Below are positions 3,731-51,191 of a stretch of DNA of 64,000 nt, piece by piece. A model generated the notes under the pieces. That model was given only the letters and a program-made list of their open reading frames with translations, had not been told where the DNA came from and searched no databases. Source of the stretch: Anolis carolinensis (Eukaryota); NCBI RefSeq assembly GCF_035594765.1, contig NC_085846.1, positions 30,615,190-30,679,189 on the forward strand, written 5' to 3'. The stretch's first letter is position 1, and every line of letters begins with the position of its first letter. Position numbers and translations under genes: made by a program.

Positions 3731-3921
3731 ATGGAACAGTATCAGTGGATCCTGCTGCTTCTCACTATCTTCATGACTGGAATCTTCTTCTTTTACCACC
3801 AGAGTCCAACCTTCAGTTTCTACTGCAAGATGTTCTTGTTCAATGGCTGGATCATACTGATGGCCACCATACTTTCTCCGTGCATAACTCTATTTTATGG
3901 GCGAAGAGTAGAAAATATGAA
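3731..3921 (+). CDS. AGPAT1/2-like coding exon 1 (hydrophobic N-terminus, ..GRRVENMK)
   Basis: [30 protein letters not shown](K); donor AA|gtgagt at 3922. Confidence 0.9.
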
Positions 3922-6900: not shown

Positions 6901-7176
6901 TGACTGGGAGTTGGGGACTTGAGGGAGGGTAGATGGGATGTGTGCATGTGCATTTGGGGCTTGGAGATAGAGTCACCCTTTCAGAACAAAACAGATATCT
7001 GCCCTCCTGTATTCAGTAAGCTCCCAAAAAATAGATCAGGGCCACCACTGAAAGCTGCGACATGAAACAGCTCGTGGTTTACCCGAATAGCACAAGTCTG
7101 ATACCCACCAAACACAAAAGTATATAGGAAGTCCATTCTAGAGCACAGCTTATATTAGTGTGTGTGTGAGAGAGAG

Positions 7177-7240
<64 letters not shown>

Positions 7241-7575
7241 CATATACAGTAGAGTCTCACTTATCCAACATTCATTTATCCAATGTTCTGGATTATCCAA
7301 CACATTTTTGTAGTCAATGTTTTCAGTACATCATGATATTTTGGTGCTAAATTCGTAAATACAGTAATTACTACATAGCATTACTGTGTATTGAACTACT
7401 TTTTCTGTCGAATTTGTTGTCTAACATGATGTTTTGGTGCTTCATTTGTAAAATCATAATCTTACTTGATATTTAATAGACTTTTCCTTAATCCCTCCTT
7501 ATTATCCAACATATTCACTTATCCAACATTCTGCCGGTGCGTTGATGTTGGATAAGTGAGACTCTACTGTATGTA

Positions 7576-7614
<39 letters not shown>

Positions 7615-8087
7615 AAGAGTGATGGAATCAGGGCACTGGACAAAACAACAAAACTACAGGCCTCCCAACCTCGAAATTTGACAACACAACCCATCATCCA
7701 CGCCTCTAGGCTGATACAACAAAAGAAAAGAAAACGAAAGTCCTAATTAGAGGGAGAGGAATAATTGTTTTTATCCAATTGCTGCCAGTTAGAATAAGCT
7801 CCGCCCACTTGGTCTCCTAGCAACCCACTCAGCCCAGGGGACAGGCAGAGTTAGACCTCACTTTGACCTCTTCCACACTGCCTATAAAATACAGATTATC
7901 TGATTTTAACTGGATTATATGGCAGTGTAGACTAAAGCCCCTTCCACACAGCTATATAACCCATTTATAATGGACTTAATGTAAGGTAAAACTTTTACCC
8001 TTTACCTTAACTACCACCAATTCCTCAATACTTTATTTCACATACCACCATACTTCGCCACAGCAATGCGTGGCTGGGCACAGCTAA

Positions 8088-8143
<56 letters not shown>

Positions 8144-11100
8144 AGGTGGGGACCCGTCATCAGAAGGAGCTCTTTTTGATGTCCGATTTCCATGAACTTT
8201 TCTTTTATAGAGAGCATTGGTGGGCCAAAAATAAAGACTCAGTAGAGATAAAGGTTAATTTCTGTTTTATTTTTATTTATTTAGTATTTATATTGATATA
8301 GCAAACTGTTGAACAATGACAAAATAATTTGCATATATATCTTGGGGGGTGTGGGATAGTGATATGTGGACATAGTACAGATTGAGCATCCCTTTTCCAG
8401 AATCCCGTATGAATGACTGGAATTGTGATACCTTGGGTAAAAATAGATAAAGCCAATACAACTATCATAAAGAGAACTGTGCACATGGTTAAAGATAATA
8501 TAGTGGAAATATGGTTGGGGAGTTGGGTGATGGCGGGAATAACACAGGAGTTTTATTTTATTTTTCTTTATTTTTTATTATTGTTTGCTCAAAAAAAGTA
8601 GTAAAGATATAAACAAAAGAAATGAATAATATCTTCGGAATTCTGGATACAAAATGCACCAAACGAAAATAAGTGTAAACACGAAAAATGGGATTTACAC
8701 ATTTTTATACAAAAGGTTTATGAATATCTGCACCTAATTGAAATTAGTGTAACTAATGTGATGAAAATGTATTAAGAAACAACAGTAATATAGGAAGAAA
8801 TAAAGATCGTGACATCTTTGCTTTCTGATGGTTTAATGTACATCCGCTATGTTAATAAGGTGTATATCAAACATACATGAACGTCATGTTTAGCCTTGAA
8901 ACCTGTTTCCAATATATCTCTTCTTTAATTTCTACCCTCTATAGAAATAATGAAATTTTGTATAATTGGCTTGTAGTAGGAATTGCTGAAGGATGTATTT
9001 CTTCAATGGTAATTAACTTACATAGGTGTCACAACTTCCAGTGGTTTCTTGATAAGCAAATTAAGGAGAATATTCATGTCTTAATCACGTTTGAAAACAG
9101 AATATAGAACTTTACAGCACAAAGCAGGCAAATCGGCATTGAAGCTGGGTAATGGCCATAACCAAGGGTTTAGGGGTTCAAGCCATCCACCACCACCCCC
9201 GAAATTTTTCAGGTTTTAAAAAAGCCTGGTTTACTCATGAATTTTAATAGGTTAACCAAATACCCATGAGTGTCCACTGAAGTTTATCTGTCTTGAGTGT
9301 CCACTGAAGTTTATCGATGGAGCCTGATTTCTAAATTATTTTACATTATGGAACTACTTTTCATGGTTCACTAAAAAAAAGCCGCCCCCCCCCCCCCCCC
9401 CGTGAATGTTCTGCTGATGATCTGCCTTCTCAACACAATTAACCCATCCCTTGCTATTGATGAGAGAAACCTATCAATAGTCCACTCCTTACGTGTGGGA
9501 TAAAGATAGGTGGATGGATCCGTTGGGGAGATGGTGGCGGGGTACAAATAAAGTTTATTATTATTATTTATTATTATCTGTTTTGTCTAGTAAAACATGT
9601 TTGTGTACTGGAGGGGAGGCAACAGAAGTAAGAGTGAGTAGATACATATACATTGGATTTTACCTTTTATTTGTGAGTCAACAACTATTTATTTATTTAT
9701 TTCCGATATGTCTACTGCGCCCTTCTCCCCAAGGGGACTCAGGGCGGCTTACACAATTGGCAGGATCACTACCAGTATATCATAATACAATAAAATAATA
9801 CAACAATTAAAATAGTTAAATAACATAGTAAAATACAATATATAAAAGATTTAACACTATAAACTGAATCCTTGAATTCTGTGGCTCTAAGTGTTACATC
9901 TTGATGATCAAAGAGATGTGCATTTGCTATGCTTGCATAGACCTGAGTGATCCAGTCTTTCTTACTTGAGAGTATGCTGATTATTTGTATTGATGCTTCA
10001 CAGTTATTGTTCTGTTTCACAGTGTTATTTCTGAGTAGGTAAGAAGAGTAATACTTTGGAAAATGCTTTGTGGTGGATTCAGAAAGCAGTGGATTGTAGA
10101 GGTGTGCGTGAAATTTTTTCCTTCATTTCCTTTGTACTGTTGTTTTGTTTTTGTTTTTTTGTTTTTTTAATATAATGTTTATTTATTTTCACTCATTCAA
10201 ATATACATACACTGCAGGTGTTTGTTGCATACAGTGCAATACTTTCATCTATTAGTCTTTCATAATCATTTCTTAGACAATATATTTACAATAAGGGGTC
10301 ACAGGCTTCTATTTGTATAATATATATAATAATATTATAATATCCAAATTTATATCCGTTTCCTCCTTGCCTTCAGTCTATTAGCTTCCTCTATGTACAT
10401 TTTTAGATTAATTTTACATTGAAATGTTGGATCATTGGTTGCCATTCCTTGACAAAGTTCTCTAAAGGTTCTCCTCTTAAGTGCATTGTTATTTTCTCCA
10501 TCATCAGCAACTCTATAATATATTGTTCCAGTTCTGCTAAGGGAGGTACCTCTGGGGATTTCCAGTATCTAGCGTATACTATCCGAGCTGCCACTGTCAC
10601 GTAAAACAAAATTCTTCCATATTTCCTTTCCAATTCTTCTTCGGGCATGTTCAAAAGGTACATTTGTGGTGTCATTTTAAAATTTGTATTTAATATCTTT
10701 TCTAGATGTACATGAATCTGTTTCCAATAGCTGTTTACTTTGTTGCATGACCACCACGGGTGGTAAAATGTACCTTTTTCTTTCCCACATTTCCAGCATT
10801 TATCGGTGCAATTGTTGTTGTTTTGTTTTGACCGTTCGTAGGAAACAAGGAAATGACATGAAAATGAAAGTCGCAGCTATCGTGGTTGTTTTCATTTTCT
10901 TTTCATACTGACAGAGAGCTGCTGCTTTCCCACTACAGCTGATGTCTACCAATGGGTCTTAATAATATGCATTGTCCGACTTACCAGGCAAGGGCTGTTG
11001 CAGCTCATCATGGCACTGCAAGGGGCTTCTTCTTCCCAAGCAGCCCTCTCGCCACCCCTGGCCCTTGCTAGGGCACTTCCTGCCTCCTGGCTTTAAAATA

Positions 11101-13383: not shown

Positions 13384-13441
<58 letters not shown>

Positions 13442-16400: not shown

Positions 16401-19400
16401 ATAATATCTAGATTAATTCCTTTGAATATTATTATATGGCAGTGTAGATTCATATAATACAGTTCAAGGCAGTTAATGTGAATTATCTATAATAATAATA
16501 ACTTTATTTTTCTATCCCGCCACCATCTCCCCAAAGGGACTTGGGGTGGCTAACATGGGGCCAAGTCCAAAAACAGAACATGAACAGAGTTATAAACATA
16601 AATGAACAATATCAACAGAACAAGTCAAATAAGATAAAATAGAATAAAATCACAATAATACAATATAACACAATATTAACAGAATAAAATGATAAAATGA
16701 TAAACAAATTATAAAACAAAATCCATCACCACTAATGGGTAGACTGACTAATTGCAATACCTTTTAATAAAGTGCCTGGACAAAGCGCCGAAGAGTTATC
16801 TAGGAGAATTTGAGGAGGGGTATGAGTCAAGTTATTTCCAATACCAGGGCAAAATAAAGTGCCAGAATGTGATAATTCTATAGGAGGGGTCAGTCATGGG
16901 GTCGATTATTCAAATGCACAGTGGAAAAGCCATGTTTTTAGCTGTTTTCTAAAGGCTGACAGGGTTGGGGCTTGTCTAATCTCCCTAGGGAGGGAATTCC
17001 AAAGCTGAGGGGCCACCACAGAGAAGGCCCTCTCTCTCGTTCCAACCAGCCGTGCCTGTGATAGAACTGGAAGTGAGAGGAGAGTCTCTCCGGAAGATCG
17101 AAGAGATTGTGCAGGCTCATAGGGTGATTTGATACTAGATTATATGGCAGTATAGAAGGGACCTGTGATCTACATTTATCTGTCCTAAATCTCCTACATT
17201 CTGTTTAAGGTGAGAGCTACACTACTATATAATCCAGTTCAAAGCAGATAATCTGGATTCAGAAACTGGATTATATGGCCATGTAGATCGGGCTAAGTGG
17301 ATGACCTTGGAATCTAAGCCTGGATCTATGCTATCACATAATTTAGATTATCAAAGCAGATAATCCACATTATTTGCTTTATACTGGATTATATGAGTCT
17401 ACACTGCCATATAATCCAGTTCAAAGCAGATAATTTTATATGACAGTGTAGATCCAGCCTTTGATCATAAGAGATGCATCATTTTATATATCACTATTAT
17501 GTTTCTGTACATTTAAAAATATGTTAAGCAGCCCTAAAAATTGCAGACTGTACTCATAGACAGGTTTGGTTGCCCATTACTTTTCATTTTCATCTCTACA
17601 ACAGTGAGCAGAACTGTACATGATATTCCAATTAGGATTTCCGTATGGATTTGTATAAGGTCAATATGATATTTTTAAATATGATATTGACAGTGCTATA
17701 TCTGATTTCTGCTCTGTTTTTGCCCACCTTAGATATTTAAAAAGAAAACATCAATCATGCACTGGATGACAGTTTTAAAGCAACATCCACTATGACCCCC
17801 TATATCCTTTGGTCAGATTGTGCTAACTCAGAACTAATTAGTGTTGAAATAAAGTTGGGCTGCTTTTTTTGGTCCAATATGCATCCCTTTGCAATTTTGT
17901 TTACTGGATTTATTTATAAAAGCCAATTTCTCCCTTTAATGAGATGCTTTAGAGTTCTTCTCAGCCTCATTTTTCTCCACCTCTCTAAATAATTTATTGG
18001 GCTCAGCAAATGCAACCACCTTATTATACATCCCTAATTCCAGCTTTTTTTTTTCTTTCAGGAGATTCCTATACTTTAAGCTCAATAAATCTATATGTTT
18101 TGCATTTTCTTTTGAGAATTTTATGTGTGCAATCTTATTATCTTCAAATGTCCCCCTTCCACAGCTTTTGCTTTTAAAACAGTGTAGCAGAAAGACACAT
18201 GACTTTATCAATTGTTCAAAAACATGTGTGCAAATTAACTACCTTACTGCTAATTCTAAGAATTACATTAAAATTAGTTTTGGTTACCTTGGCAACAAAA
18301 CCTTTGTTTTAAAGGTGTATTGTTGTTGCGTTTTTACTGAGAGGCAGAAAGGAGCATTTACAGGATTTTTAACTTCAGAAACTTCGTTTTCGTGGCTACC
18401 ACAAACTATGTTGAATTGGTTAAGACTCTATGAGATATTCATTGAAAAATGATAGCAAAATATGCTGCGGGATGTTCTGTAAAAACAAAAAAAATTGGAG
18501 TTTAATAAACCTTTTCCATGTTTTTATGATAGAACCAATTAGGAGATGACATGTATAACCCAGGAACAAAAATCATGTTATCTATTGTCTTTAAATTATT
18601 ACATAAAGTGTCTATAGAACTTTGCTGAGCAAGGTTACAAATGTGCCAACTAAATGCGTATAACAACTTGGCATTCTTTACACAAACAAATCTAAACCTC
18701 TTCTCTCTGTAGGTTTATGCATCTCAGCATCCTGCCACTCAAAAATATCTATGGCATTAAGTTCATGGTGCAGGGTTCTGAGAATCTGAATATCAAGAAG
18801 CCTTATGTGATCGTTTCCAACCATCAGAGCTGTTTGGATCTTCTGGGTAAGTTACCAGCTTATTAAATCTGAAATCTAGCATTGGATGGAAACAGAAGAT
18901 TTGAATTATATTATTACTTATTTAATGTCTTACCCACCCTTAAACTCAGAAGTGGGAAGATGAGAGTAGAAAGCTGTTGATGAATTTAAGAGGAACAAAA
19001 ATGGCCATTCATAATTTAAAGCCAACCTGGTGGAGTGGATCCTAAATTAAAATATAGGCCAAGTATTGTATATCAGTTGTAACTACAATGATGGAGCTCC
19101 ATCATCATAGTTACATCTAATGATGCCATTTTCCAGATTTTCAGACTGGCAGCAACCCAGTTTAAAACTTTGAGGCATTGGGAAATGATGGAATTGCTTG
19201 CCTGGTCAGATGTCACATGGAGAACAGGCAGTTGGAAAGATCCCTTATAGTGTCCTCCTATAACTGCTTGTCTCAATGTACTTTGTGACCAGGAAAGCAC
19301 CACAGAATCTTTTACCAGTTCTCCAATTTATACATCCTGGAAACCCTTCAGTAAGGGTACATATTGCCAAACTAAAAAGCTAGGTTTAGAAGGAGATGCT

Positions 19401-22400
19401 TGGTCATTAACAATGGTAAACATGAATCATGTGTTACGAGATCACAAGCTCAGTTTTATGATCTCATAATTACTGAACTGGATGCCAGCTGCAATATTGT
19501 TCAATCAGAGTTATTCAAATCTGTACTGCACAATAAATAATTAGAGATTTATAAAAGTAGAACACTTTCCCCAAGATGAATGTCATAATTCAAACTTTGT
19601 GTCAAATTCTCAATTTCTGCTGCTGGTATTTTCAGCTTTAGATCACAGTGGTGATCTCCCTAATGAGGAAAAAAGAAATTCAGATATGAAAATTGAACTT
19701 TGACAAATTACTATTAGAATGTACCTACTTGTTAGCCTGAAACCTGAATATTGTTGTAACCACAGATTCAAAAGATTACAATTGTGGTTTTTGTTTTGAA
19801 TTTAAAAGGATGGATGAAGAAAACTTAAAAACATTTGGCACAGTGATGCTGTTGTTGTTATGAACTTTCAAGTGAACTCCAACTTCTGGGGATCTTTTCC
19901 TAGAGCCCTCCTCCCCCCAAGATTTATTAAGAAGACATTTGCCCATTGCCCTAAAAAATGATGAGTATGACTTGTCCAGGGTCACCCAATTCTGACTGAG
20001 TCAGAATTCAAACCCTGGACTCCAAGACTCCCAGTCCAACACTCAATGCAATGTTTGCATTCTGTCCCCTCCACTTTTCTCTGATAAAATCCCAAAATAG
20101 TTCAGAAGTGCTAGGCAGGAGGACATGGGTGAGGAGATTTAGGGATTGGTTCCAGCCTTCCAGTAGGCAAAGTGAGGCAGTTACTGTTGGGCAAGTGGCT
20201 TTATTAACAAAAGGCCCACCTAATAAACATATAGCAGAGTAACTTATTAGCAGCAGCGTGCCCAGCACCAGTAGCCAAAGGTGATAAAAAGAACAAAAAC
20301 ACACAGACCAATGTTATCTCTTCTTTTGGAGGCTTTTCTTTATAGCAAAATAATATGGTTGCACTATTTACGAAAACAAGGTTTCCATAACACAAATAAA
20401 GTTCTTTATTCTTCCTTCTTTGCTTTCATGCTGGGCTTCTTTCTCATGCAGATAAAAAGCTTCACTCTCACAGAGGCTCCTCTCATACCAAACTTACACA
20501 GAAGCTTCACACAGTAGTTTTACACACAGCAACCTTCACACTGTAGCTTCACACATGAAGCCTTCAACCTGAGGCTTCTCTCGCCAAAGCTTCTCATACT
20601 GAGGCTTTCTCACATTGAAGCCTTCTCATACTGAGGCCTTTTTCATACTGAAGCCTACTAAGCTACAGGCACACCTACTATTTTATCAGCTTTTGCTGAA
20701 TAATTGCATCCATGTAACCTTTTCAGTGCTTGACTCACATTTTTGTAATTAAAAATACCTAGTTAATTTTGAATGTTTCTGACAATTTCCTCAAGAAACA
20801 GATACCTAAAGCCCTTCAGGTGAAGTAGAGAATGTTTTCCCATCAACAGTGTTGACAATGAAATACGTATCAATTTTCTCAACCTAGCTTTGTCAGGAGC
20901 AATAATTTTTAGATGATGTTGCTTAATTGTCAGCTGAGGTTCTCCAGTAACAAAACACATTTTTCATTTTTAAGGCATGTTGGAAGTTATGCCAGAGCGC
21001 TGTGTGACCATTGCCAAAAAGGAGCTGCTGTATATGGGCCCAGTAGGCTGGGCTTGCTGGCTGTGTGGCTTAATTTTCATCGACCGCAAGAACAAAAAGA
21101 GTGCCATGGACGTCATGAACCGTGTTGCGCAGATCATGAGACAGGAGAATGTGAGTAAACCCTGGAGTGAGGGAAGCAGAAATGGGGTCCAGCATTGGAA
21201 GGGGAGTCCCGTGGGAAGCAAGGATAGTGTGACATGAGTGAATGTATTCATACCCTCCAACTGTAATGATATGGCAGATACAGTCCTAATTAATCTTCAG
21301 TCATCCCATTTTTAGCTACTTTTGAAATGTCAGTGCCATATAACCATAATAGACTTGGAAGGGACCTCATGGACCATCTAGCCCAGTGAATTTCAACCTG
21401 TGGTCCCCAGGTTTTTGGATTACAACTCCTAGAAATTCCAGCCAGTTCACCAGCTGTTAGGATTTCTGGAAGTTGAAGGCCAAAACATCTGGGGACCCAC
21501 AGGTTGAGAAACACTGATCTAGCCCAATATCCTGTTTAATGCAGGATCTCCAACTAAAGTATCCCCATCAAGTAGCTATCTGGACTCTTTTTTAAAAATG
21601 TCCAGAAAAGGAGACCCCCATGACTGCTTTGGGTAATTTGTCCCATTGCTCATATTGTCAAGAAGTTCTTCCTAATGATCAGTCAAATTCTACTGTCTTG
21701 TAACTTCAAACTACTGGACCAGATCCTACCCTCAGATTGTAACATGTATACATAGAGCATTGGTTCTCAACTTGTGAGTCCCCAGATGTTTTGGCCTTCA
21801 ACTCCCAGAAATCCTAACAGCTGGTAAACTGTCTGGGAGTTGTAAGCCAAAACACCTGAGGACCCACAGGTGGAGAATCACTGGCGTAGAGGAACACCTC
21901 TACTTTCACCTCTCTTTTCTTGAAAACAAAAAGTTCACTAGAGCTTTGAATAAGACAAGTGTATTAATAGAGGAGATGTATGTAAAGGGGAAGAATGCCC
22001 TTTTCCTCCTCCCATTGCTACTACTACCACCATCCCAGGCTCTCTCCTCATTGCCCCCTCCCATCCACCCCAGATACCTGTGTGTCCTGTGTATATGGAG
22101 GGAAGGGGGTGTGAAAGGGGAGTCATCCTATGGGAATTCATGAAGGTGATAAGACTGACAAGGAACAATAAAAGCTATTGCTGGATATGTTTATGAGAAT
22201 ATAAACTTAGCTTCACATGCATGCCAAGAAGAAAAAGGACTTGAATGGGTCCCTACAAATAAATACCAAGTGCTGTAGGCTATATTTCCGAGGAACTGGT
22301 AAAAACCCCTCTGAGTATTCCTTGCCTAAGAAAACCTTATGAAATTCGTGAAGATGCCATTAGTTGAGAGGCAACTTGAAAGCACATTCCACACAAAGTT

Positions 22401-25400
22401 TATAGGGCATGCCTGTAATCCTATGCATTATTAGCTCCTGCAGGTAAGCTCCATTTAACTCAGTAATGCTTATTTCTGATTGTATACTTGTAAAAAGGAA
22501 TGAACTTTAACAAAAGATCTTTCAGCAGGTGAACTGCAGTTTTTGGTAGAAATGCGAACAAATTGCAAAAAGGTATTAACATTTAAACTACTATTTTAAA
22601 GTAGGAATAACATAAAAGGATAGGGAACAATCCAGCCTCTGGTTTGTAGCCCTAGCCCCTTTCTACACTGCCATATGAAATCCAATTGATCTGCTTTGAA
22701 CTGGATTACATGACAGTGTAGACTCATATAATCCAGTTCAAATCAGATAATGTGGATTATCTGATAATCTGAATTATATGGCAGTGTAAAAGGGACCTTA
22801 AGTGCGTTTCATGGCTGAGTGGGGATTCGATCCCTGGTCTCCTGAGTCATAGTCCAGTGCTCAGACCACTACATCACTCTGGCCAAGGTTCAGTGCTGTT
22901 AATGTGCCTAACATATTAGGTTCAAGACAAAACCAACTTCTAAATCGTCTCCTAACTTGTATGTTTTTCTGTGGACATGAGTATGACATTTTGATGTCAC
23001 TTTTCCAAACATGTTTCAGTTTTCATTTAGGAAATGTTGAAGGGTATGCTTAATTTATGAAAAGTGGAGGAAACACACTACAGAGGTGGTGGTGTTGGGC
23101 AGTTTAATCCAGGGGAGCACATAAGCAGCCTAAAGGATATTGGCATTAGAAAGAATTGATTCAGGAGCCGTGGCCAATCCTGGAAACAAACAACACTGAG
23201 GGGTGTATGTACTGTCAATCCTAATACATTTTTTAAAAATGTCTGGCAAGTCTACTGGACCATGAATGACTGCACACAATAAGCAGAAATTCAGCCAGTA
23301 CCAAACATTTCCCCATATACAAAGATGTTGTTCTGGATAGTATTCCAGGTGTGGTCTGACCAAGGAAGAATAGAAGGGTATCATGACTTCCCTGGATATA
23401 GTGTCTAGATGCAAGGAAGTCATGCTACCCCTCTATTTCGCCTTGGTCAGACCATACCTGGAATACTGTGTCCAATTCTGGGCATCACAATTGAAAGGAG
23501 ATGTTGACAAGCTGGAATGAGTCTAGAGAAGGATGACTAAAATGATCAAGGGTTTAGAGAACGAGCCCTATGAGCAGCGGCTCAAAGAGCTGGGCATGTT
23601 TAGCGTGCAGAAGAGAAACTGAGAGGAAACATGATCGCCATGCATAAATATATGAGAGGAAGTCATAGGGAGGAAGAAACAAGCTTGTTTTTTTTCTGCT
23701 TTGGAGACTAGAATGCGGAACAAGGGCATCTTCAAAATTACAGGAAAGGAGATTCCACCTGAACATGAGAAAGAACTTCCTCACTGTGAGGGCTGTTCAG
23801 CAGTGGAACTCTCTGCCCCGGACTGTGGTGGAGGCTCCTTCTTTGGAGGCTTTTAAGCAGAGGCTGGATGGCCATTTGTTGGGGTGCTTTGAATGCGATT
23901 TTCCTGATTCTTGACAGGGGGTTGGATTGGATGGCCAGTGAGGTCTCTTCCAACTCTCTGATTCTATGATTCTATGAAAACCTCTCCTGTTGTTATTTGC
24001 CATACAGCTGTTAAAGGCACAAGTGCTTTGCTAGAGGTACAAAAGAGCACAGATTAGTAGCAAATTGCATTCTGCTGTCTTAGGGTGCATCTAAAAAGGT
24101 AAAGGTAAAGATTTTCCCCAATATTACGTCTAGTCATGTCTGACTCTGGAGATTGGTGCTCATCTCCATTTCCAAGCTGAAGAACCGGTGTTGTCCGTAG
24201 ACACCTCCAATGTCATGTGCCGACATGACTGCATGGAGCACTGTTACCTTCCCTCCAGAGCAGTACCTATTGATCGACTCACATTTGCATGTTTTTGAAC
24301 TGCTAGGTTGGCAGAAACTAGGGCTAACAGCGGGAGCTCACCCCGCTCCCCGGATTCGAACCGCCAACCTTTCGGTCAGCAAGTTCAGAACTCAGCGGTT
24401 TAATCTGCTGCGCCATCGGAGGCTCCTAGTGCGTCTACCACTTTAACTTCTATGGTTCAATGCCATAAGACTATGGCAATTATAGCTTTACAAGTTCTTT
24501 AGCTTTCTTTTCCAAATAGTGTTGGTGCCTCACCAAACTCAACCCCCCAAATTCCATAGCACTGAACCATGGCAATTAAAGTGATGACAAAATGCATGAA
24601 TTCTGCAGTGTAGAGCCAGTTTTAGAAAAAGGTACCATTTTTAACTTGTGATAATCTTGAGTCCTTTTTTTCTGCATGCCTGCCCAGCTGAGGGTATGGA
24701 TGTACCCAGAAGGCACAAGAAATCCAGAGGACACTTTGCTTCCCTTCAAGCGGGGAGCCTTTCACCTGGCTCTGAAGGCTCAGGTAAATTCTTGAATTAT
24801 AATTATAATTTCAAAGCAGTTTTTGTCAAGGGAAAGGGATCGTGTCAACTGATTTAACATTTTGGAAGCAGCAGCAGCAGTCATTCTTGATTCCAGTAGC
24901 TAAAACTAAGAAGGAAATTGTCACTCAGATTTCTTGTCACTCAAGTTCTCAAAAAGTGTTCCACAATTTATTTTCTCTTTCTCAGATTTTAGCTCCATTA
25001 GTTTTATTTCACTTTTGCATGGCCTTATTTATTGTAACATTATAATTACAAGTATTTAAAATACTTTAAAGAAAATATGGCTGGATCTATACTGCAGCAT
25101 AATCTAGATTATCAATCTACACTAATATAATCCAATTTAAATCAGGTAATCTGGATTTTATATGGCAGTGTAGATGGGGCCTGAGAGATCGCATCTTGCC
25201 CAAGGTCACTCGGGCCTTTTCTACACAGCCATATAAAATCCAGATTATCTGCGTTGAACTAGATTATATGGCAGTGTAGACTCAGATAATCCAGTTCAAA
25301 GCGGCTAATGTGGATTTTCCACTTTGATATTCTGGATTATATGGCAGTGTAGAAGGGCCCCTTGGTCTCAAGTCATAGTCCAGTGCTCAAACCACTGCAC

Positions 25401-28400
25401 AATGGGCTGTCTCTTAATATCTACTAAGAGGTATGGAAATGGCTCACTATCTAAAATAGTATCATGATTTAAATAATTAAAAATAGCAAGAGATGTAATA
25501 GTTTGGAAAGGCTTGTTAACTTATTTATTATGATATATCTGGTTTTATGGGTAAGTCACCTACATCAAGTTTAGTGCCAGAACCTCTTTGGATAAATACA
25601 AGGTGCCGGGATAATGGTTGACGATACTTCTGAAATGTTCCATAATATAGCTGCTTCCCAGCAAATTAAAAACCCTGGTCTATTATTATAATTTTTGATG
25701 ATGATGATGATATTTATTTATACCTCACTTTATCTCTCCCAAAGCAGACTCAAAGCACCTAGAATATTTAAGACATCTTTTGCAAAGACTACCGTTTAAT
25801 AGAAATGGAATGTGAAAGGGAATAGTCGAAAGCCTTTTCTTCGTATCTCAAAGCCTCTAAAATTAATTGATTTTTTGTTGTTGTACAGGTCCCCATTGTC
25901 CCTATTGTGACCTCCTCTTTAAAATGCTGCTACAGCTATAAAGAAAAGAAGTTAAAACCAGGTGAGTCTGAAGATCAATTGAAACCATGAACTAGGTGAC
26001 TAAACTACGATTGAGATTAAGCAAAATGGAAACACATAATTAGGGCTGCATTTTAAAATTTTGAATGCCAGGCGGATGTCTAATCTTGAGACAACTTGGA
26101 AGGTTAAGTTTCTTTCTCCATCAGTTTCAGTGCAACCCTAATCATGTTTACTCTGGTATAAATCTTATTGCTTTCACTTGTTGTTGTTGTTGTTGTTTGC
26201 CTTCAAGTCATTTCTGACTTATGACAACCCTAAGGCAATTCTATAATGGGGTTTTCTTGGCAAGATTTGTTTACTTTCAAGTAAAGGTGTAGAGGATTGC
26301 AAATTTATATCTTCTGCTCTCAAAGTTTAGGTACTCAGTTAATGAGTTAGGGTGAAGAGTAGCTGTACCCCCAAAATGATGTTTTTGGTTCACATAAATC
26401 TGCAAGTATTACATATGTTGTTGGAAATAGCAACCTTCTTGAAGCCTCCACTAGTTATTTGTTATGTATATAATTCAGTATGCAGTTTTCCTTGACTCTA
26501 TGTTGTGGGAGAAGCTGCAGACTATGTTATCAGAGCTTGTTCTGGGCTTGTTCAGGACTCAGACTCCATTGAGTGTGCTTTCAGATTCCAGTAGAATCAG
26601 AAGACATTAGACTTTCAATCTAGAGACTTTAGTAGAAAAAGTACAGTTTAGAAGTTAGTTGAAACAGACTATAGAGACTCGACTTTCAAAACAGAGAGAT
26701 TCTTTGGACTTCGGACTGTTGATTATGAGAAAGATGCCCTGTGTTACCTACACAGAGAAACTACTTTAAATCCTATTTGTAACTGGATTAATATGCAATG
26801 TACCTGTATGCTGAATACATGAAGTTTGTGAGTGAAGCAACTACATTACTTTTAAATAAGTCTACTTATTTTGTCTCTTGAGATCATGATTTTAAATCAA
26901 AACGTTTTAAGGGAGAGTAGATTTTTTTTGGGCAACTGAAAGAACACTTCTGAAACTCTGGTGTGTGTGTGTGTGTGTGTTTTGCACTGGCATATCTTTG
27001 TCCCTAACAGTTGAAAGAGATGTCTAGGTATATCAGTTTAACAGCCGAGAAACCTAATTGCCTTGCATGAATACTAATGGATATTTACCACTAGGGAGAA
27101 GGTTAACTAAGTTAGTTTTTAACGCTTCTCACGGAGATTTCCATTTCCCAGAAGGTTATAGTGAATGCCATTTTCCAAAAGGTTATGGCATCATTTTTCA
27201 AAATGTTAGCCCCCAATGGCGCATCAGGTTAAAGTGCTGAGCTGCTGAACTTGCTGAATGAAAGGTCAGCAGTTCGAATCCGGGAGTGGGGTGAGCTCCC
27301 ACTGTTAGCCCCAGCTTCTGCCAACATAGCAGTTCGAAAACAGGCAAATGTGACTAGATCAATAGGTACCGCTCTGGCAGGAAGGTAACGGTGTTCCATG
27401 CAGTCGTGCTGGCCACATGACCTTAGAGGTGTCTACGGACAATGCCGGCTCTTCGGCTTAGAAATGGAGATGAGCACCAACCTCCAGAGTTGGACTTGAC
27501 TGGACTGAATGTCAGGGGAAAACCTTTACCTTATGATTTCTAACAAGGTCGTGCCTTTCCAAAGATAATAATTTCTCTGAAATATGTATACACTGATGTC
27601 CACTGAGATTTGGTTCCAGGGCTCCTCTGGATACCAAACTCTTGCATGCTCAGGTTCCATTATATATAAAGACATAGTAAAATATTGTGCCTTATATAAC
27701 ATACTAGCTGTGCCCAGCCATGCGTTGCTGTGGCATTTTCTGGTGGTGTTGGTGAGAAATTGTTGAGGTAGTAGTGGTATTGAATGTCTGTTGTATGGTA
27801 GTCTTTATGTTTAGTATGCACACTGAAGTGGATTATATGGCAGTGTGGAGTAGAGGATAATCCAGTTCAAAACAGATAATATAAGATTCTAAATGGGTTA
27901 TATAGCTGTGTGGAAGGGCCTTGAGTCTACACTGCCATATAATCCATTTAAAATCTGATAATCTGTGGAAGAGGCCTAAGTGAGGCCTAACTGTGCCTGT
28001 CCCCGGGGCTGAGTAGGTTGCTAGGAGACCAAGTGGGCGGAGCTTAGCCTTCTAACTGGCAGCAATTGGATAAAAACTATTATTCCTCTCCCTCTAATTA
28101 GGACTTTATTTTTCTTTTCTTTTTGTTGTATCAACCTAGAGCCGTGAATGATAGGTTGTGTTGTCAAATTTCGAGGTTGGGGGGGCTGTAGTTTTGTTGT
28201 TTTGTCCGCTGCCCTGATGCCATCACTCTTTTATATATATAGATAAGGTACACCATTTTACTATACATGAGTCTTTATATTGGGAGAAAAATATCTTCTG
28301 AATAACACTCTATATTGTTCTAAGATTTTCAGTTTATTATTCTAAAAATAGTAAATACCTTCCAAAGATTCTTAAAGATTTTATTTTCCCTAGCATGAAT

Positions 28401-31400
28401 ATAAGAAAGTCATTTCATCACAAGGCACATCTACACTGACTACTTATTCCAAATGGCATTTGAATCAGCTCTGTAGTGGCTAAACAACGCACAAAGTTGA
28501 TTGGGATTAATGCGGACAACTATAAAATGGTCTTGAACTGTGTTAGCCAAAGTCTCAAGTTACTTTAAATTTCCTCTGAGAACCTGGAGCAAACTAATAT
28601 AAACAGTTGGGTCAGTTCTGAGATGGAACTGATTGCAACTGCTTACACATGGAGATATAATAAATTTTTCCAACCTTCTTCAGAAAAAATGCAAAACACA
28701 TTCCTGTGATTCCTTCTGCAGTGATGCATGTTTTAAAGTGTCCTTGAGGAAGCATTCAAGGAGCTAGCCTTGTTCATTTGTTTAGACATAAAAGAGGAAA
28801 GGGATGGGGGAGAAGGAGTCTAGCAGCATCTTTGAGACTGATTTATTTTAGCATGAGCTTTCCTGCATTTCAGTCCATTTATTCAGCTGCACTGACAGAG
28901 TACAATAATAAATCACCTGTGTTTAAGCAGTTACACAATTTTGAGGGTGGGATCTGAATATAATGGGATACAGAATGATGCAGATTGGACACTGGCCATT
29001 AACCTTCCGAGAGCTGAATGAGTTACAGTCCGTCAAGTCACAGGCCAGTTAGTTTTGAAGTATGAAGGCAATACATTCTGCGTGCCAGGAAGCCAGCTCT
29101 GTTGAACAGGAGGATTTTCCAAAGAGAGTCCTTTTGTTACAGGTGAATGGTGATGAAACCTATATATTAATAAATGTAGTTGCCAAGAAACCATCATCTC
29201 TGCTAAATTGCCCTCAAAGGTGTGCTTAGATGTCTCGTCTCACTTGTTGAACTAATAAAAATTATTTTTGTGCCTCATTCCTTCTTTTCTACCTCCCTAG
29301 AAATAAACAAAGCGCAGAAGGAAATATGATTGCTGCAATAAAAAATTAACATGATAGGAAAGAGGCAAGGCTACAGCCTTCCTACTGACATCAGTGTGTT
29401 AGTACAGTATTACATAGAGCCCATTGGACTGCATTTCATTTACCCATGTCTAAATATGTTTTTTCTAGGCATTTCCTAGGTCTTCCAGTGTGACCCAACT
29501 TCTGCTGGAAGTTGTTCATTCAATAGGATTTGCTATTGCCCATGGGTTTGTCTTGGAACATATCACTTGCAGATGCAGGGGTCATACTGTAAAAGGTAAA
29601 GGTAAATGTTTCCCTTTGACATTAAGTCTAGTTGTGTCCGACTCTGGGGGTTGGGGCTTGTCTCCATTTCTAAACCGAAAAGCCAGCATTGTCCGTAGAT
29701 GCCTCCAAGGTCAGGTGCATGACTGCATGGAGCGCCATTACCTTCTTGCTGAAACGGGAACTATTGCTCTACTCACATTTGCATGTTTGCAAACTGCTAG
29801 GTTGGCAGAAGCTGGGGCTAACAACGGGAGCTCACCCTGATCCCCGAATTTGAACTGTCGACCTTTCGGTCAACAAGTTCAGCAGCTCAGCGGTTTAATC
29901 TGCCCCAGGGGTGCTTGGGGTCATACTGTATTTCAAGTAAAGACCAAACATATGAAAGAGAACTGAGACATGGGTTAATTATCTTAACAAAAACTAGGAA
30001 ATATCTGGGAATAAGTTGACTTTTTTTAACTACAGAATCCTAGGATGTGCAGGTTGATGAGGCACCAACACTTTTTGTCAGAGAGAGTGAATGACCTTGT
30101 AAAACTATAACTCTCATTATTCCTTAGCATTATGCCATGGTAGTTAGTGGCATCAAAACTGCATTTGTTCTACAGTGTAAATGCATCCTTATTCATGTGT
30201 TTCTTTGCAAAACTAGTATACTGTCTACATTCATGAACAGCGTGATGCATACATTATGAAGGGAGCAAACTCCAAAATACATAATTATTGATTGGCATCT
30301 TGTTTACTCCTTAAAAAAATATATAATAACACTTTATTTATATTCTGCTCTATCTCCCCGAGTGGACTCAGAGCAGATGACAACATACACAGATAGGCAA
30401 ACATTGAATGTGTTTAATACAGTGGAACAACAATGACATACAGATACACAGACCAAAGATAAAGGCTTCCCCTTTCATCTCTGGCTTTCTGGAGGCGGCG
30501 CTCAACTCTGGCCATGGGGAGGTGCTCTTGTTCCATTTCCAAGCTGAGGAGCCTGTTGTCCGTAGACACCTCCTGGTCGTGTTGCCAGCATGGCTGCATG
30601 GGTGCCTTTATTACCTTTCTGCCGAAGCAGTACCTATCCATTGACTCACATTTGCATGGTTTCGAACTGCTAGCTTGGCAGGAGCTAGGTCTAACAACAG
30701 GAGCTAACCCTGACCTGCGGCTTCGAACTGCCAATCTTTAGGTCCGCAGATTCAACAATTCATTGGTTTAACCCATTGCACCACCATGGTTGGAAAAACT
30801 TTCCAACCTTCAAATGAGGGCCATCCCTTATAACAGTTGACACCTGCCATTTTATGAGACAAGACTTCTAACTTTCTAATAAAGGGCATCTGACAATCCT
30901 AAGGGAGTGTAGTGTTTGTGTGTATATACGTGTGCACGTGGGGTGGGGAGTACAGCCCCTCTCCCCCAGTCTCCTAAGGGGCTTGTGCACCCCCAAACCT
31001 TTAGTAGTTGTCTACCTCTGATCTGGACATAAATATTCACCTGCTGAATTTCTTTTTAGCTTGTTAAAAACCTGGCAGCTCTGCTAGAAAACAAAAGACT
31101 GGCGATCTTACTCTTAAAGCCATCGGTTCAGTCGATGACATACAGGTTAAAAGGATCTCGGCATGCCGTAGAAGAAAATAATCACCTGATGTTATGTAAA
31201 ATTTTGGAGAGTTCAGCTCAAGCACGTACATGTGCGTTCCAAATCATTAAGTGTTCAACATTCACGTTTGCAGCAATGATACATCTCTGTTCCAACAAGG
31301 AGGTGGGAATGGTGCATTGCAGCTATTAAACACATAGTGTAAGACAAATACCGGTATGTCAGCACTGCAAACCTATTCTCCACATATTCAGTATCTTTAC

Positions 31401-32110
31401 TTTTAAACTAGACATGATGACGACTAACTGCTTTGTGAGCAGTGGGTTGTTTTCTTTAAAAGCAACCTTGGGAATTGGGGCAATAACTCATACTATTGCA
31501 ACAGATTTAAGGGGGACAGATTTAAGTCTTCACCTCTGCTGTAGTTTTGCTGTTTTGATACATGATTTTCATCTTTTTTAGACTTAGGAGGATGTATATT
31601 TAATCCCATTCTGATATATAGAGCTCACACTTCCATTTTTATGTTTTGCTGTCTTTGTCCTTGCCCATGTTCCTGATGTTCCTGAGCCCACTTTGAGTAA
31701 GGCTGAAGCAAGCCAGTCAGAGGCAGAGCCATGCTTTCATTGATTAATCAAATTGTGTGATTGTTAGCTGCCTTGACTCCCCTTGGGGAGAAAGGTGGGG
31801 TATAAATATAGCAAAAATAAATAAATAAATAAATATACTTCAGTGCCTGAGACATTTCAGAATTGCTCCAGGCCCTTTCAGTGGTTCTCATCCTCATACA
31901 GAGAAATACTATGCATGATCAGTCCCATTCCCACTGTATTCAATGCAGCTCACTCCTAGGAATCTGTGCATGCAAATACAGCCTTAATCATGACTAATTG
32001 GGTCAGGGGACACTGAATATTTACTTTTCAGTTATATGTATATGCATGTGTGTGTATGCGTATGCACATAAGTTTATGTACACATGACACACCCACTAAC
32101 AAATCAAGAC

Positions 32111-32163
<53 letters not shown>

Positions 32164-34833
32164 TTACAAATTACAGCACACCTATATGGCAAACATTCAG
32201 TGCTGTTATACAATTAACAAGGACAGGCAATACAAAAACAGAGGTAAAGGCTTTATCCATCTTTTTCATTTCTGGCATCTGGAGGCTGTGCTTGACTCCA
32301 GCCATGGGGGGAGGGTTCTGTCCCTCCATCTTCCATGCTGAGGAGCTTTGTCATCTAAGACATCCTCCCGATCAAATCGTCAGTATGTCCTTATAGGCGC
32401 TTTTATTACCTCCCCTCTTAAACTGGTACCTATTTACTCACATTTCTGTTTTCAATATGCTAGGTGGGCAGGGAGCTGGGTCTGATGGTGGGTGCTCACT
32501 CCGATCCGGGCTTGAACTCCCAACCTTTTGATTGGCAGGATTTTCTGTAGCTTAACAGTAACTAAGCCCGGCCCCAGTACACTGATGAAATAGCAGAATA
32601 TTCTCAAGACAGCAAAATTATGAATGGGGAAGAACATATCGTTAGGAAAGGTTGCAGCAGTTTAACTTTTGCTTGAAAAGCAATATTTCACAATTCCTCC
32701 TCTAACCCCTACTATGGTAACTGTAAGGAAACTACTTTTGCACTTTGATTTGAGTTTGCAACAATTGAAATCAGCTGAGGCGAACAGGCCCAAAAGTATG
32801 AAGATTTTGGGATAAAATTCTAGCATGGATAAAACGAATAATGGGGGAAACAATACACTTCAGGGGAGCTTTAATACAGATCTTGGAATTCGAAAGTGAA
32901 AATAAGCATTAGGTAAATAAAAATCTGTATCACCCATGCTATGTGCTGCAAGACTCAAAATAGTCAGAATTTGGAAAAAATTAGAGATTTGGTCAATAAA
33001 GAATTAGTTAAATATGATATGGGCTATAGCGCTATCAGAAAAGTTAACCAATGCATCAAAATGTAGAGATGGGAATAGTTAATGTAACAATGAAAATGTA
33101 TCTTGCTAAATGTTTTTTTATTATAAAATAAATAAATAAAATGAAGCAAGCTGAGGACAAAGAAGGAAGTGGGAAGAAACAAGAATAACAGGGACATTGT
33201 GGTGACAGAAGATTAATTAAGTCTGTTTCTGACAAATTGGAACAGTTGTAAGGTGTGACACACACAGAGACACAACTATGCAGACAATATTTTGTCCCAT
33301 TAGTCTTGTAAGTTCCTGAATTCTAGTATTCTGGCCAGGGAGCACAATAGCACTGGAATAGGTAAGGAAGTTTCTGTGCATTTTAAAATGTATAATTGTT
33401 TTACAATTTTCATCTCTCCCCCCCCCCTTCTCTTTCACACACATGCATTTCTTCATTTATTTTCTGAGAAGTCCACAGCTAGAAGCACCTTTTTGTTTTG
33501 TTTGGGATCAACCAAAATGCCTAACACTGTGTGTTATGGGATTTTAATTGTTCCTGGTAAAGTTATTGCCAGCCTTATGTGTGGATTTTTACTTTGATTG
33601 CCTTTTCTGGTCTTTGTTTCTGTGAGTTTTCCAAGCTGTATAGCCATGTTCAAGAAGCATTCTCTCCTGACATTTCACCCATATCTATGGCAGGCATCCT
33701 CAGAGGTTGTGAGGATGCCTGCCATAGATGTGGGCAAAACTTCAGGAGAAAATGCTTCTGGAACATGGCCATAAAGCCCGGAAAACTCACAGCGACCCAG
33801 TGATTCCAGCCATGAAAGCCTCTCTTGGTTTCTTTGGTGCCTTCTGAAATACACTCACATTCCAAACATTCTAGAACTCACTCTTTAACTGATAACCCAT
33901 CATTTACCAATTAGTTCCCATAAAGTGACATTCCCCTTAGCCACGGTGGATCGTTAATAGGTCTTCTTCACAGACTAATTAAGGTTGCCCTGTTAATCCC
34001 AGCAATGCAGTATGCAATTGGAGAGTATCATGTAGGACAAGCCTGGCCTTTACAAGCTGTGTATAAATTAACTATTCCTGGACTGGACTATGAAAAAAAA
34101 GATGGTTTGTCTTCAGAATTGGCATGACCAGAGAGAGAGAGATTGCACCTTTCCCCCCAATAATTAACATTTTAATGACCTACGTGAAAAGATTTCTCCC
34201 CTATGGTAGAGTGCTCAGATATATAGTTCTTCTAGTTAGTAGCCTGATATTCATTCCAGAAACAGTTTTGGCAGAGGATGAGCTGTTCATTCTATCATGC
34301 AAGTGACAATATTTTCATTCCCCCAGGGCTGTAAGGCATTATTCATATTAGTACCAATAAAACTCCTCTAGATACGATGTACTCAAATCAGGGCTCTCTG
34401 GTTTGATTCTAGTACCTCTGCAGTTGGTCCCTGGAAAGTTTCCAGGAAAGTAAAAGAAAAATATGCACAATAACAAGGTGCTGGGCTGGTATGGAATAGC
34501 TAATAGTGATTGCACAACTGGAATAGCATCTTGTGTGATAAAGTCCTTAGAAAGAATGAACAAAGCTATCATTTTTATAGAGCCACCTATATGCTTGTAT
34601 CCAATCCGCCACAGCTTTTCCCTCTGCTAAATACTGCTATTTTCACATTGTTTCATTACATCTCTTAACCCCCAACAGGAAACTGTACCATCCGAATTTT
34701 ACCCAAGATAGAAACGCAAGGCCTTGGACTAGAAGAAGTCACAGCACTGGCTGAGAGCACCCGTAAATTGATGCAGGAAACTTTCTATGAGATTTCTGAG
34801 GATCTGCATGGTGAGAAGGAAATGAAACAGTGA
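3731..34833 (+). CDS. 1-acyl-sn-glycerol-3-phosphate acyltransferase (AGPAT1/AGPAT2-like LPAAT), complete spliced CDS join(3731..3921,18713..18846,20975..21150,24688..24783,25889..25961,34679..34833), 274 aa
   Basis: Six exons of 191+134+176+96+73+155=825 nt in one frame, all GT-AG; PlsC motifs [35 protein letters not shown]; internal exon sizes match the AGPAT1/2 structure as recalled; strong Kozak atcATGG. Confidence 0.93.
4904..5216. promoter_or_regulatory. Imperfect foldback element with convergent CTCF-consensus motifs at both ends
   Basis: CCACTAGGGAGCACTAG (4904-4920,+) and CCACTAGGTGGCACTAG (5200-5216,-); arms pair over about 45 bp, plus inner arms 5033-5068/5121-5157; L2-type tail inserted at about 4960-5027. 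Confidence 0.55.
5740..5886. mobile_element. Harbinger-type palindromic MITE
   Basis: cccttctaaactgccata..ggcagtgtagaagagggcc with internal ataatccag/ctggattat palindromes; same family as 2651. Confidence 0.75.
7183..7244. repeat. Compound (TC)n(TA)n microsatellite
   Basis: Direct reading. Confidence 0.95.
7247..7569. mobile_element. Tc1/mariner-superfamily MITE
   Basis: TIR cagtagagtctcacttatccaac / gttggataagtgagactctactg with TA TSD; second copy at 59876-60196. Confidence 0.88.
7600..8087 (+). mobile_element. Non-autonomous Helitron
   Basis: 3' subterminal hairpin gccacagcaatgcgtggc followed by CTAA|T; 5' end in TA tract (tatataaaagagtgatgg); reverse-complement homolog at 27704-28243. 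Confidence 0.75.
8091..8140. repeat. (TA)n microsatellite
   Basis: Direct reading. Confidence 0.95.
10140..10715 (-). mobile_element. L1 LINE 3' fragment (ORF2 C-terminus, 3' UTR, A-rich tail)
   Basis: ORF 10403..10675 (..[35 protein letters not shown]) resembles the non-mammalian L1 ORF2 C-terminus; AATAAA and A-rich tail on - near 10140-10185. Confidence 0.8.
13385..13441. repeat. (ATT)n microsatellite
   Basis: Direct reading. Confidence 0.95.
16053..16362 (+). mobile_element. Sauria SINE
   Basis: gggagccccggtggcaaagtgtgttaaag..ggttcaaaccccg head; body; acctttacctttt tail. Confidence 0.92.
16390..17164. mobile_element. Harbinger-type MITE split by an antisense L2 3' fragment (about 16489-17125)
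   Basis: MITE reads ..gtgaattatct | insert | tttgatactagattatatggcagtatagaagggacc; the insert is the reverse complement of the L2 3' end seen at 58560-59122. Confidence 0.75.
17213..17459. mobile_element. Two adjacent Harbinger-type palindromic MITEs (17213-17293, 17318-17459)
   Basis: ataatccagttcaaagcagataat core with ggatcta/tagatcc termini. Confidence 0.7.
18713..18846 (+). CDS. AGPAT1/2-like exon 2 (catalytic HX4D motif)
   Basis: ctctctgtag| [45 protein letters not shown] |gtaagt; 134 nt. Confidence 0.93.
20455..20657 (+). repeat. Degenerate minisatellite, units of about 14-18 bp (gaRgcYttctcatact)
   Basis: Repeated gaagccttctcatact / gaggctttctcacatt / gtagcttcacaca units. Confidence 0.7.
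20975..21150 (+). CDS. AGPAT1/2-like exon 3
   Basis: ttttaag| [58 protein letters not shown] |gtgagt; 176 nt. Confidence 0.94.
21340..21735 (-). mobile_element. Old CR1 3' fragment hosting a hAT MITE
   Basis: gacttggaagggacctcatggaccatctagcc..aagaagttcttcctaatg matches the CR1 3' end pattern at 1-240. Confidence 0.65.
21384..21516. mobile_element. hAT MITE with SPIN-like TIR
   Basis: TIR cagtgaatttcaacctgtgg / ccacaggttgagaaacactg; perfect 8-bp TSD atctagcc. Confidence 0.88.
21758..21883. mobile_element. hAT MITE with SPIN-like TIR
   Basis: cattggttctcaac..gagaatcactg; TSD acatagag/gcgtagag. Confidence 0.82.
22655..22797. mobile_element. Harbinger-type palindromic MITE
   Basis: gcccctttctacactgccata..ggcagtgtaaaagggacc. 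Confidence 0.78.
23335..23977 (+). mobile_element. CR1 3' fragment (about 23400-23977) with an inverted duplicate of its 5' end (23335-23395)
   Basis: ..[29 protein letters not shown]..; 3' tail attctatgattctatga; ORF 23130..23423(-) carries the same [14 protein letters not shown] motif. Confidence 0.9.
24094..24426 (-). mobile_element. Sauria SINE inserted into a MITE TIR
   Basis: aaaggtaaaggtaaag tail, body, and head ..cggattcgaacc..cgccatcggaggctcc; flanks gtgcatcta / gtgcgtcta. Confidence 0.9.
24688..24783 (+). CDS. AGPAT1/2-like exon 4 (PEGTR motif)
   Basis: gcccag| [32 protein letters not shown] |gtaaat; 96 nt. Confidence 0.94.
25079..25360. mobile_element. Two Harbinger-type palindromic MITEs (25079-25181, 25212-25360)
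   Basis: TIRs ggctggatcta/tagatggggcc and gggccttttctacac/gtgtagaagggccc. Confidence 0.75.
25889..25961 (+). CDS. AGPAT1/2-like exon 5
   Basis: gtacag| [24 protein letters not shown](G) |gtgagt; 73 nt. Confidence 0.92.
27208..27532 (+). mobile_element. Sauria SINE
   Basis: tggcgcatcaggttaaagtgctgagc..gttcgaatccggg head; acctttacctt tail. Confidence 0.9.
27704..28243 (-). mobile_element. Non-autonomous Helitron
   Basis: On - strand begins A|TC (28243) and ends CTAG|T (27704), with subterminal hairpin gccacagcaacgcatggc and no TSD; contains Harbinger-MITE fragments. Confidence 0.82.
29592..29916 (-). mobile_element. Sauria SINE
   Basis: Perfect 14-bp TSD ggggtcatactgta (29578-29591, 29917-29930). 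Confidence 0.92.
30322..30790 (-). mobile_element. Sauria-like SINE with an extended L2-type 3' tail
   Basis: Sauria-like head and body (30465-30790) continue into ..ctgagtccactcggggagatagagcagaatataaataaagtgttattat, an L2-like 3' end. Confidence 0.65.
32111..32575 (-). mobile_element. Sauria-like SINE with extended tail ending in (ATT)n
   Basis: Diverged body; shares the ggcaaacatt segment with the 30322 copy; (AAT)n at 32111-32163. Confidence 0.55.
33622..33820. mobile_element. Internally deleted Penelope-like element: two inverted termini forming a hairpin
   Basis: 33622-33701 is the reverse complement of 33710-33790; the junction falls at a TGAGG microhomology. Confidence 0.82.
33664..33708 (-). 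ncRNA. Minimal hammerhead ribozyme motif (Penelope-associated)
   Basis: - strand reads CCU-CUGAGGA-U-GCCUG..(loop)..UGGGU-GAAA-U-GUC^AGG: CUGANGA and GAAA boxes, stem II, GUC cleavage triplet, 3-bp stem I. Confidence 0.55.
34679..34833 (+). CDS. AGPAT1/2-like last coding exon
   Basis: ccaacag| (G)[50 protein letters not shown] with TGA at 34831-34833. Confidence 0.9.

Positions 34834-46298: not shown

Positions 46299-46345
<47 letters not shown>

Positions 46346-51138: not shown

Positions 51139-51191
<53 letters not shown>

Follow-up and report, generated by a model that had tools for sequence, protein, structure and literature searches.

Lysophosphatidic acid acyltransferases (LPAATs) closest to the protein described here are AGPAT1 (LPLAT1, LPAAT-alpha), the vertebrate enzyme of the endoplasmic reticulum (ER) acting on lysophosphatidic acid (LPA), and AGPAT2 (LPLAT2, LPAAT-beta); to our knowledge, both are treated as the sole two LPAATs of their subfamily in mammalian lipid biology. 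Among solved structures, the best match by sequence and by fold is the bacterial PlsC of Thermotoga maritima (5KYM). The window analysed here, i.e. the whole stretch of 64,000 nucleotides (nt) from contig NC_085846.1 of Anolis carolinensis (positions 30,615,190 to 30,679,189, forward strand), contains next to FTSJ3 a gene for an LPAAT of 274 amino acids (aa), encoded by six plus-strand exons (3731-34833) and designated AGPAT1L in the following. It is interpreted as a functional AGPAT1 paralog that originated by duplication at the DNA level before the divergence of squamates and birds, resides in a neighbourhood marked by PRR29 and FTSJ3 and has no known counterpart in mammals (rough probability 0.85).

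AGPAT1L has in common with AGPAT1 the length class, the positions and phases of five introns, the four acyltransferase motifs, two N-terminal helices and 50-55% of the residues. It differs in its locus (FTSJ3/PRR29 versus EGFL8 and major histocompatibility complex (MHC) class III), in an unlike C-terminal tail, in five derived residues (F37, S49, P72, L89 and L168) and in its placement outside the sauropsid AGPAT1 clade, to which another protein of the same genome, the true AGPAT1, belongs. The likeness to AGPAT2 comprises fold, motifs, exon plan and few residues, e.g. GPVG and ENL-VW-YPEG, whereas sequence identity is 44-46%; since the AGPAT2 clade (support 100/99) excludes the FTSJ3-linked protein, it is not AGPAT2. 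Indeed, in 15 alignment columns diagnostic for AGPAT1 versus AGPAT2 it exhibits the AGPAT1 state in seven, the AGPAT2 state in two and neither in six: the mixture of AGPAT1-like and AGPAT2-like residues reported by a first-pass annotation of the window is real, but lopsided. The catalytic motifs of PlsC align with those of AGPAT1L; the differences are an identity of about 20%, the bacterial source and N-terminal helices of other length.

The true AGPAT1 of the anole is encoded on another chromosome-scale contig of 325 Mb: a second A. carolinensis protein of 268 aa (XP_062829728.1, P0343) falls into one 90% cluster with AGPAT1 of Pogona, Sceloporus, Varanus and pythons, and the downstream neighbour of its gene encodes EMI and EGF domains (EGFL8-like), as expected of MHC class III, where the first-pass annotation had suggested looking for a separate AGPAT1; in human, AGPAT1 is flanked by EGFL8 as well. 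AGPAT1 has been placed in the anole MHC region in a study of the latter (PMC9679377), and LPLAT2 (AGPAT2) is reported for A. carolinensis in a 2026 survey (PMC13500770). Since a separate true AGPAT1 adjoins an EGFL8-like gene in the same species, the FTSJ3-linked gene is an extra paralog and not the AGPAT1 of the genome. The view that it is the only AGPAT1, moved from MHC class III to the FTSJ3 locus, would agree with its NCBI label ("AGPAT alpha" in Anolis and Pogona) and with its closer resemblance to AGPAT1 (about 53% identity, versus 44% to AGPAT2; 7 versus 2 diagnostic columns), but P0343 shares ~90% of its residues with AGPAT1 of other squamates and lies within the true clade (100/98), and both genes are also present in Sceloporus, Pogona, Podarcis, Gekko and several snakes, so that a translocated AGPAT1, as had been considered initially, is next to untenable. 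The other initial proposal, a third and lineage-restricted LPAAT paralog, stands with regard to the extra paralog; the restriction holds only at the level of sauropsids, given the squamate orthologs and a sister group in birds (see below).

The coding sequence comprises 825 nt (274 codons and TGA; boundaries read from the letters of the window, which is devoid of N runs), and all introns of the model are of GT-AG type, each with a good polypyrimidine tract (Table 1). A six-frame scan recovered every motif named for the complete enzyme (NHQSCLD, FIDR and PEGTR) on the plus strand, and exons 2, 3 and 4 each singly match the Pfam family PF01553 (Acyltransferase). The internal exons (134/176/96/73 nt) are of the same size in AGPAT1 of Anolis and Sceloporus and in both bird paralog groups; because of this agreement with AGPAT1, the gene is a DNA-level duplicate, as had been deduced from its introns of AGPAT1/2 type. 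A processed retrocopy is ruled out by the five GT-AG introns at AGPAT1 positions and phases.

The RefSeq model (XP_016850080.2) begins at Met15 (position 3773). Compared with Sceloporus, codons 1-14 contain four synonymous and no nonsynonymous changes, and Met15 is replaced by Leu in A. sagrei; in consequence, the ATG at 3731 is considered the conserved start, and the 274-aa model appears better than the shorter RefSeq version. Upstream of this ATG, ~130 nt are strongly conserved between Anolis and Sceloporus, as expected of a 5' untranslated region (UTR) or core promoter. The surroundings of exon 1 have an observed/expected CpG ratio of 0.05-0.14 at a GC content of about 0.41, so that this exon lacks a CpG island, as the first-pass annotation had stated.

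Table 1. Exons of the anole AGPAT1L gene and position of its neighbour FTSJ3 in the window.
Feature	Position	Strand	Remarks
Exon 1 (coding)	3731..3921	+	conserved ATG; N-terminus with two long hydrophobic helices; phase 2 at the end, GTGAGT following
Exon 2, 134 nt	18713..18846	+	motif I NHQSCLD at 18819-18839 (catalytic His/Asp); PF01553 with this exon alone E 1e-05
Exon 3, 176 nt	20975..21150	+	motif II GLIFIDR, FIDR at 21076-21087; Pfam with this exon alone E 2e-11
Exon 4, 96 nt	24688..24783	+	motif III PEGTR at 24706-24720; Pfam with this exon alone E 1.5e-08
Exon 5, 73 nt	25889..25961	+	motif IV VPIVPIV
Exon 6	34679..34833	+	C-terminal 51 codons; TGA stop at 34831-34833; C-terminus same as in RefSeq XP_016850080.2
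FTSJ3	44093..64000, runs off the window	-	Spb1_C at 44093-44317 and 48293-48754, DUF3381 at 63531-63833; 3' end faces the acyltransferase gene

The gene is already annotated in RefSeq (XP_016850080) and UniProt (G1KUJ2) under the name "AGPAT alpha". The translated spliced model was compared with database proteins locally, and the exons were searched one by one: the 274-aa A. carolinensis entry G1KUJ2/XP_016850080.1 (P0173) equals the model at 273/274 residues and differs at the last one, and the 260-aa XP_016850080.2 (P0361), encoded on a 120-Mb contig, is identical over residues 15-274, C-terminus included. P0173 stood in for the model in whole-protein profile searches, fold prediction and alignment. 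It scored 139.7 bits with PF01553 (cut-off 23) and 133.8 bits with TIGR00530 (cut-off 102.95). The N, H and D residues of NHxxxxD are invariant in 51/51 aligned relatives and in all AGPAT1L orthologs; F143, R146 and E175-R178 are likewise invariant among the aligned relatives, and NHxxxxD and EGTR are kept in every AGPAT1L ortholog. According to the AlphaFold2 model (predicted local distance difference test score, pLDDT, 91.9; predicted template modelling score, pTM, 0.87), the N-terminal helices would be located at residues 2-24 and 26-55. Foldseek identified PlsC (5KYM) as best match in the Protein Data Bank (PDB; E 6.6e-12, template modelling score 0.64 by target), followed by glycerol-3-phosphate acyltransferases and PatA; by sequence, P0173 matched 5KYM with E 2.6e-18. 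Compared with the PDB, exon 3 alone gave only chance zinc-finger matches and a weak match to 5KYM.

Among the matches listed, the closest relatives were those of Sceloporus (81% identity) and Pogona (67%), followed by cordylids, snakes, Varanus and geckos (53-63%), bird proteins of ~300 aa (53-60%) and true AGPAT1 (50-55%); with exon 3 as HMMER query, a Phrynosoma fragment was the best match (86%), all others being at or below 66%. Orthologs are annotated as "alpha-like" in geckos, snakes, lacertids and iguanians. A careful maximum-likelihood (ML) tree was calculated from 64 rows and 275 columns under LG+C20 with posterior mean site frequencies (PMSF), the outgroups being four distant relatives from the exon-3 search; partial or aberrant rows (P0007, P0143, P0316, P0328 and P0242) were left out. 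In this tree, the squamate AGPAT1L group (100/97) is joined to the bird ~300-aa group (termed B1) with a support of 99/93, and the sauropsid AGPAT1 clade (100/98), which holds P0343, and the AGPAT2 clade are separate from AGPAT1L. The abovementioned derived residues F37, S49, P72, L89 and L168 are common to squamate AGPAT1L and bird B1 as opposed to the conserved AGPAT1 state. A tree constrained to unite the AGPAT1L and AGPAT1 proteins of squamates is worse by 65 log-likelihood units and is rejected by the approximately unbiased (AU) test (p 0.0018).

The gene order points in the same direction. In the window, the matches to Spb1_C and DUF3381 on the minus strand confirm the reported location beside FTSJ3, and both genes are convergent at a distance of about 9.3 kb; the orthologs of a snake (L004), a gecko (L005) and Sceloporus (L008) are convergent with an FtsJ/DUF3381/Spb1_C gene in the same way. 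On the opposite flank, the lizard Zootoca, the swan and the ostrich have PRR29 upstream of the gene in the same orientation: a gene with PF15248 (PRR29 family) lies directly upstream of the Zootoca ortholog, the gene upstream of the ostrich AGPAT1L ortholog carries PF15248 as well, and in swan a 210-aa gene 2.5 kb upstream of B1 bears the PRR29 signatures LMMIQN..M.Q, VFHHHY and SATGTVGA. With the swan exon translations as queries, PRR29 was not found in the 10-kb upstream flanks of the A. sagrei, Sceloporus, snake and gecko loci. The bird ~300-aa "AGPAT alpha-like" proteins (swan P0183, ostrich P0188) resemble AGPAT1L not only as sister clade and in the upstream PRR29 but also in exon structure and the GWACWL sequence in exon 3; on the other hand, their C-terminal tail is longer (exon 6 has 233 nt versus 152 nt), their genes are compact and GC-rich, and the gene downstream is not FTSJ3 in ostrich and swan. 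With regard to the FTSJ3 synteny proposed as a check at the outset, the convergent arrangement is seen in snake, gecko and Sceloporus, with another downstream neighbour in both birds. In ostrich (Struthio camelus, L011), the downstream gene (18202-24879) encodes a 1435-aa product, the first exons of which resemble the N-terminus of the alpha-2-macroglobulin family and not FTSJ3.

From the joint clade of AGPAT1L and B1, the AU rejection and the PRR29 synteny it follows that the gene predates the squamate-bird split, which took place roughly 280 million years ago. A squamate-only (or even iguanian-only) AGPAT1 duplicate, with the bird "alpha-like" genes duplicated independently, could account for the different downstream neighbours of squamates and ostrich and for the failure to find a turtle or crocodilian ortholog; this is very improbable in view of the 99/93 support for the joint clade, the AU p value of 0.0018, the PRR29 gene directly upstream on the same strand in one lizard and two birds, and the derived residues common to both groups.

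Several observations weigh against a functional AGPAT1 paralog that was duplicated before the squamate-bird divergence. In quick trees, AGPAT1L (and a second bird group, B2, see below) was placed outside all AGPAT1 and AGPAT2 with a support of 97-99 in the Shimodaira-Hasegawa-like approximate likelihood ratio test (SH-aLRT), and in the careful tree it forms a polytomy with respect to the AGPAT1/AGPAT2 split: the phylogeny proposed as a check locates the protein outside both clades and together with the squamate alpha-like and bird B1 proteins. No turtle or crocodilian ortholog was present among the best 120 matches of three word searches, and ten named clusters of relatives found with exon 3 contained none either; because of this, an origin common to all sauropsids would imply that the gene was lost or escaped annotation in some of them. 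Furthermore, FTSJ3 was not detected within 10 kb downstream of B1 in swan or ostrich, and PRR29 was not found in the 3.7 kb upstream of the gene in the window (swan PRR29 exon translations as query). Finally, the sequencing runs with spliced contigs (see below) are guessed to be RNA, and both contigs stem from one study.

The quick-tree placement, the lack of a fixed position in the careful tree and a locus that is neither the MHC nor the NOTCH1 neighbourhood would be compatible with an old vertebrate paralog, e.g. a third copy left by the genome duplications at the base of the vertebrates, that sauropsids alone have retained and that disappeared from mammals, amphibians and fishes. Such an older origin is a minority possibility and regarded as unlikely: no member was found in amphibians, lungfish, coelacanth, ray-finned fish or sharks, nor any other AGPAT1L member outside the sauropsids, in any search, so that many independent losses would be needed. 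Moreover, the evolutionary rate of the group is 3-4 times that of AGPAT1, a setting for long-branch attraction to the root, to which the quick-tree placement outside AGPAT1 and AGPAT2 may be due, and the AU test does not reject a tree in which AGPAT1L and B1 nest within sauropsid AGPAT1 (p 0.19, for a group defined after viewing the quick tree). Favoured is therefore an AGPAT1 duplication on the stem lineage of sauropsids or amniotes, after which the copy evolved fast; we infer its timing relative to the mammal-sauropsid split.

Further AGPAT1-like copies were encountered in the genomes under comparison. In Zootoca vivipara (L010), PRR29 (8969-11987) is followed by an AGPAT1-like copy (21351-35928) and a second one from 45488 onwards, i.e. 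a tandem duplicate is present in this lacertid; the first copy type (P0161, P0237) forms a very long branch, and one fused model was named "proline-rich protein 29" by NCBI. Birds possess the additional 269-aa AGPAT1-like group B2 (P0024, P0240, P0244 and P0333), which has the same exon plan and adjoins an animal haem peroxidase gene; in Anas platyrhynchos, the gene extends over 10001-18061 (L002) or 10001-17959 (L003). B2 is sister to AGPAT1L only weakly (86/30), and no squamate B2 member was seen. The tuatara (Sphenodon punctatus) contains a divergent AGPAT1-like protein of 207 aa (P0031, UniProt A0A8D0H6P0) on a long branch of unsure place, which may or may not be the AGPAT1L of this species.

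AGPAT1L is under purifying but relaxed selection. The pairwise ratio of nonsynonymous to synonymous substitution rates (dN/dS) of the A. carolinensis gene is 0.24 versus A. sagrei, 0.28 versus Sceloporus and 0.25 versus gecko, similar across all three exon blocks and well below 1 in each, as compared with 0.073 for AGPAT1 between Anolis and Sceloporus. The elevation to 3-4 times the AGPAT1 value, the very long branches of the lacertid copies and Varanus, and the gene not being found in turtles and crocodilians might be taken as signs of a redundant duplicate that drifts to loss and is transcribed without a function of its own; chicken "AGPAT1" (XP_001233846.2), a symbol not tied to one paralog group, was also undetectable in all tissues tested (PMC6726641). 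Yet geckos, snakes, iguanians, lacertids and birds all show an undamaged reading frame with every splice site and the two catalytic motifs preserved, and an intact gene thus spans the squamate-bird split with dN/dS values of 0.24-0.28, well under 1, which renders decay of a functionless copy highly improbable in comparison with a functional paralog.

The splicing predicted by the model is confirmed by assembled contigs. Sequencing reads were placed on 5,901 letters of the window, and the stretch of exon 3 was present in 20 runs labelled with one organism. In two samples of one 2014 study (X17 and X20), contigs connect 21150 directly with 24688, the skipped stretch having GT..AG borders: the X17 contig (493 nt) contains exons 3 and 4 in joined form and reaches 193 nt upstream of exon 3, and the X20 contig (record 24, 799 nt) joins exons 3, 4 and 5 and continues for another 473 nt, which would provide room for exon 6 and about 0.3 kb of 3' UTR. 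An apparent shift of 3 nt at the exon 4/5 joint results from a repeated CAG that fits either side. The transcript support demanded for the spliced model is thereby given for the exon 3-4-5 junctions in contigs of two runs; X18 and X19 contributed unspliced pieces only. With regard to tissue, chicken AGPAT1L is listed among the genes rising in late embryonic skin in a transcriptome paper that uses this symbol (PMC5774689); the latter possibly denotes the bird ~300-aa group, though the 269-aa group is also a candidate, and the rise may be read as a weak hint of the skin or gland expression that the first-pass annotation had suggested in view of the lacking CpG island.

On the established model of the family, AGPAT1L would be a membrane-anchored LPAAT: the two N-terminal helices would hold the enzyme in the membrane, presumably that of the ER, the His/Asp pair of NHxxxxD would activate the sn-2 hydroxyl of LPA for the attack on acyl-CoA, the FxxR and EGTR motifs would bind glycerol phosphate, and phosphatidic acid would be the product. 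Enzymatic activity, ER location and any shift in substrate or tissue use are likewise inferred. A more far-reaching proposal is that of a sauropsid-specific LPAAT, as opposed to a redundant copy, with its own substrate preference or tissue role, e.g. in supplying phosphatidic acid for lipids of the water barrier or the glands in the skin of reptiles and birds, perhaps as an old vertebrate paralog kept only by sauropsids. The conservation from squamates to birds at a 3-4-fold higher dN/dS, the CpG-poor promoter region and the rise of chicken "AGPAT1L" in skin are compatible with a role of its own; the proposal is nevertheless put forward as a doubtful one.

In addition to AGPAT1 and AGPAT2, the subfamily has at least one further member in lizards, snakes and birds, and probably two in birds. 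As the paralog is often mislabelled "AGPAT alpha", comparative work and expression studies on reptiles and poultry can confuse it with AGPAT1; clear naming as a separate orthogroup with the PRR29/FTSJ3 synteny as marker would prevent this. No published description or dating of the AGPAT1L group as a separate paralog was found in the literature, and the main text of the 2026 survey, which includes Anolis and chicken (PMC13500770), does not mention the group. With respect to genome biology in general, the gene, which is already annotated and whose enzyme family is well known, represents an ordinary gene-family duplication; added here are the definition of the orthogroup, its age and its rate of evolution. 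AGPAT1L is a natural case for testing subfunctionalisation.

Regarding the remainder of the window, a claudin-like open reading frame (ORF) of 134 aa on the minus strand (38661-39065) gave no Pfam match at E 0.01. ORFs of RVT_1 and CR1-like long interspersed nuclear elements (LINEs) are located in FTSJ3 introns at 57731-58765 (+) and 52737-53219 (+) and at the start of the window at 77-454 (-); related CR1 tails occur in AGPAT1L introns at ~23.4-24.4 kb, where the read depth is enormous.

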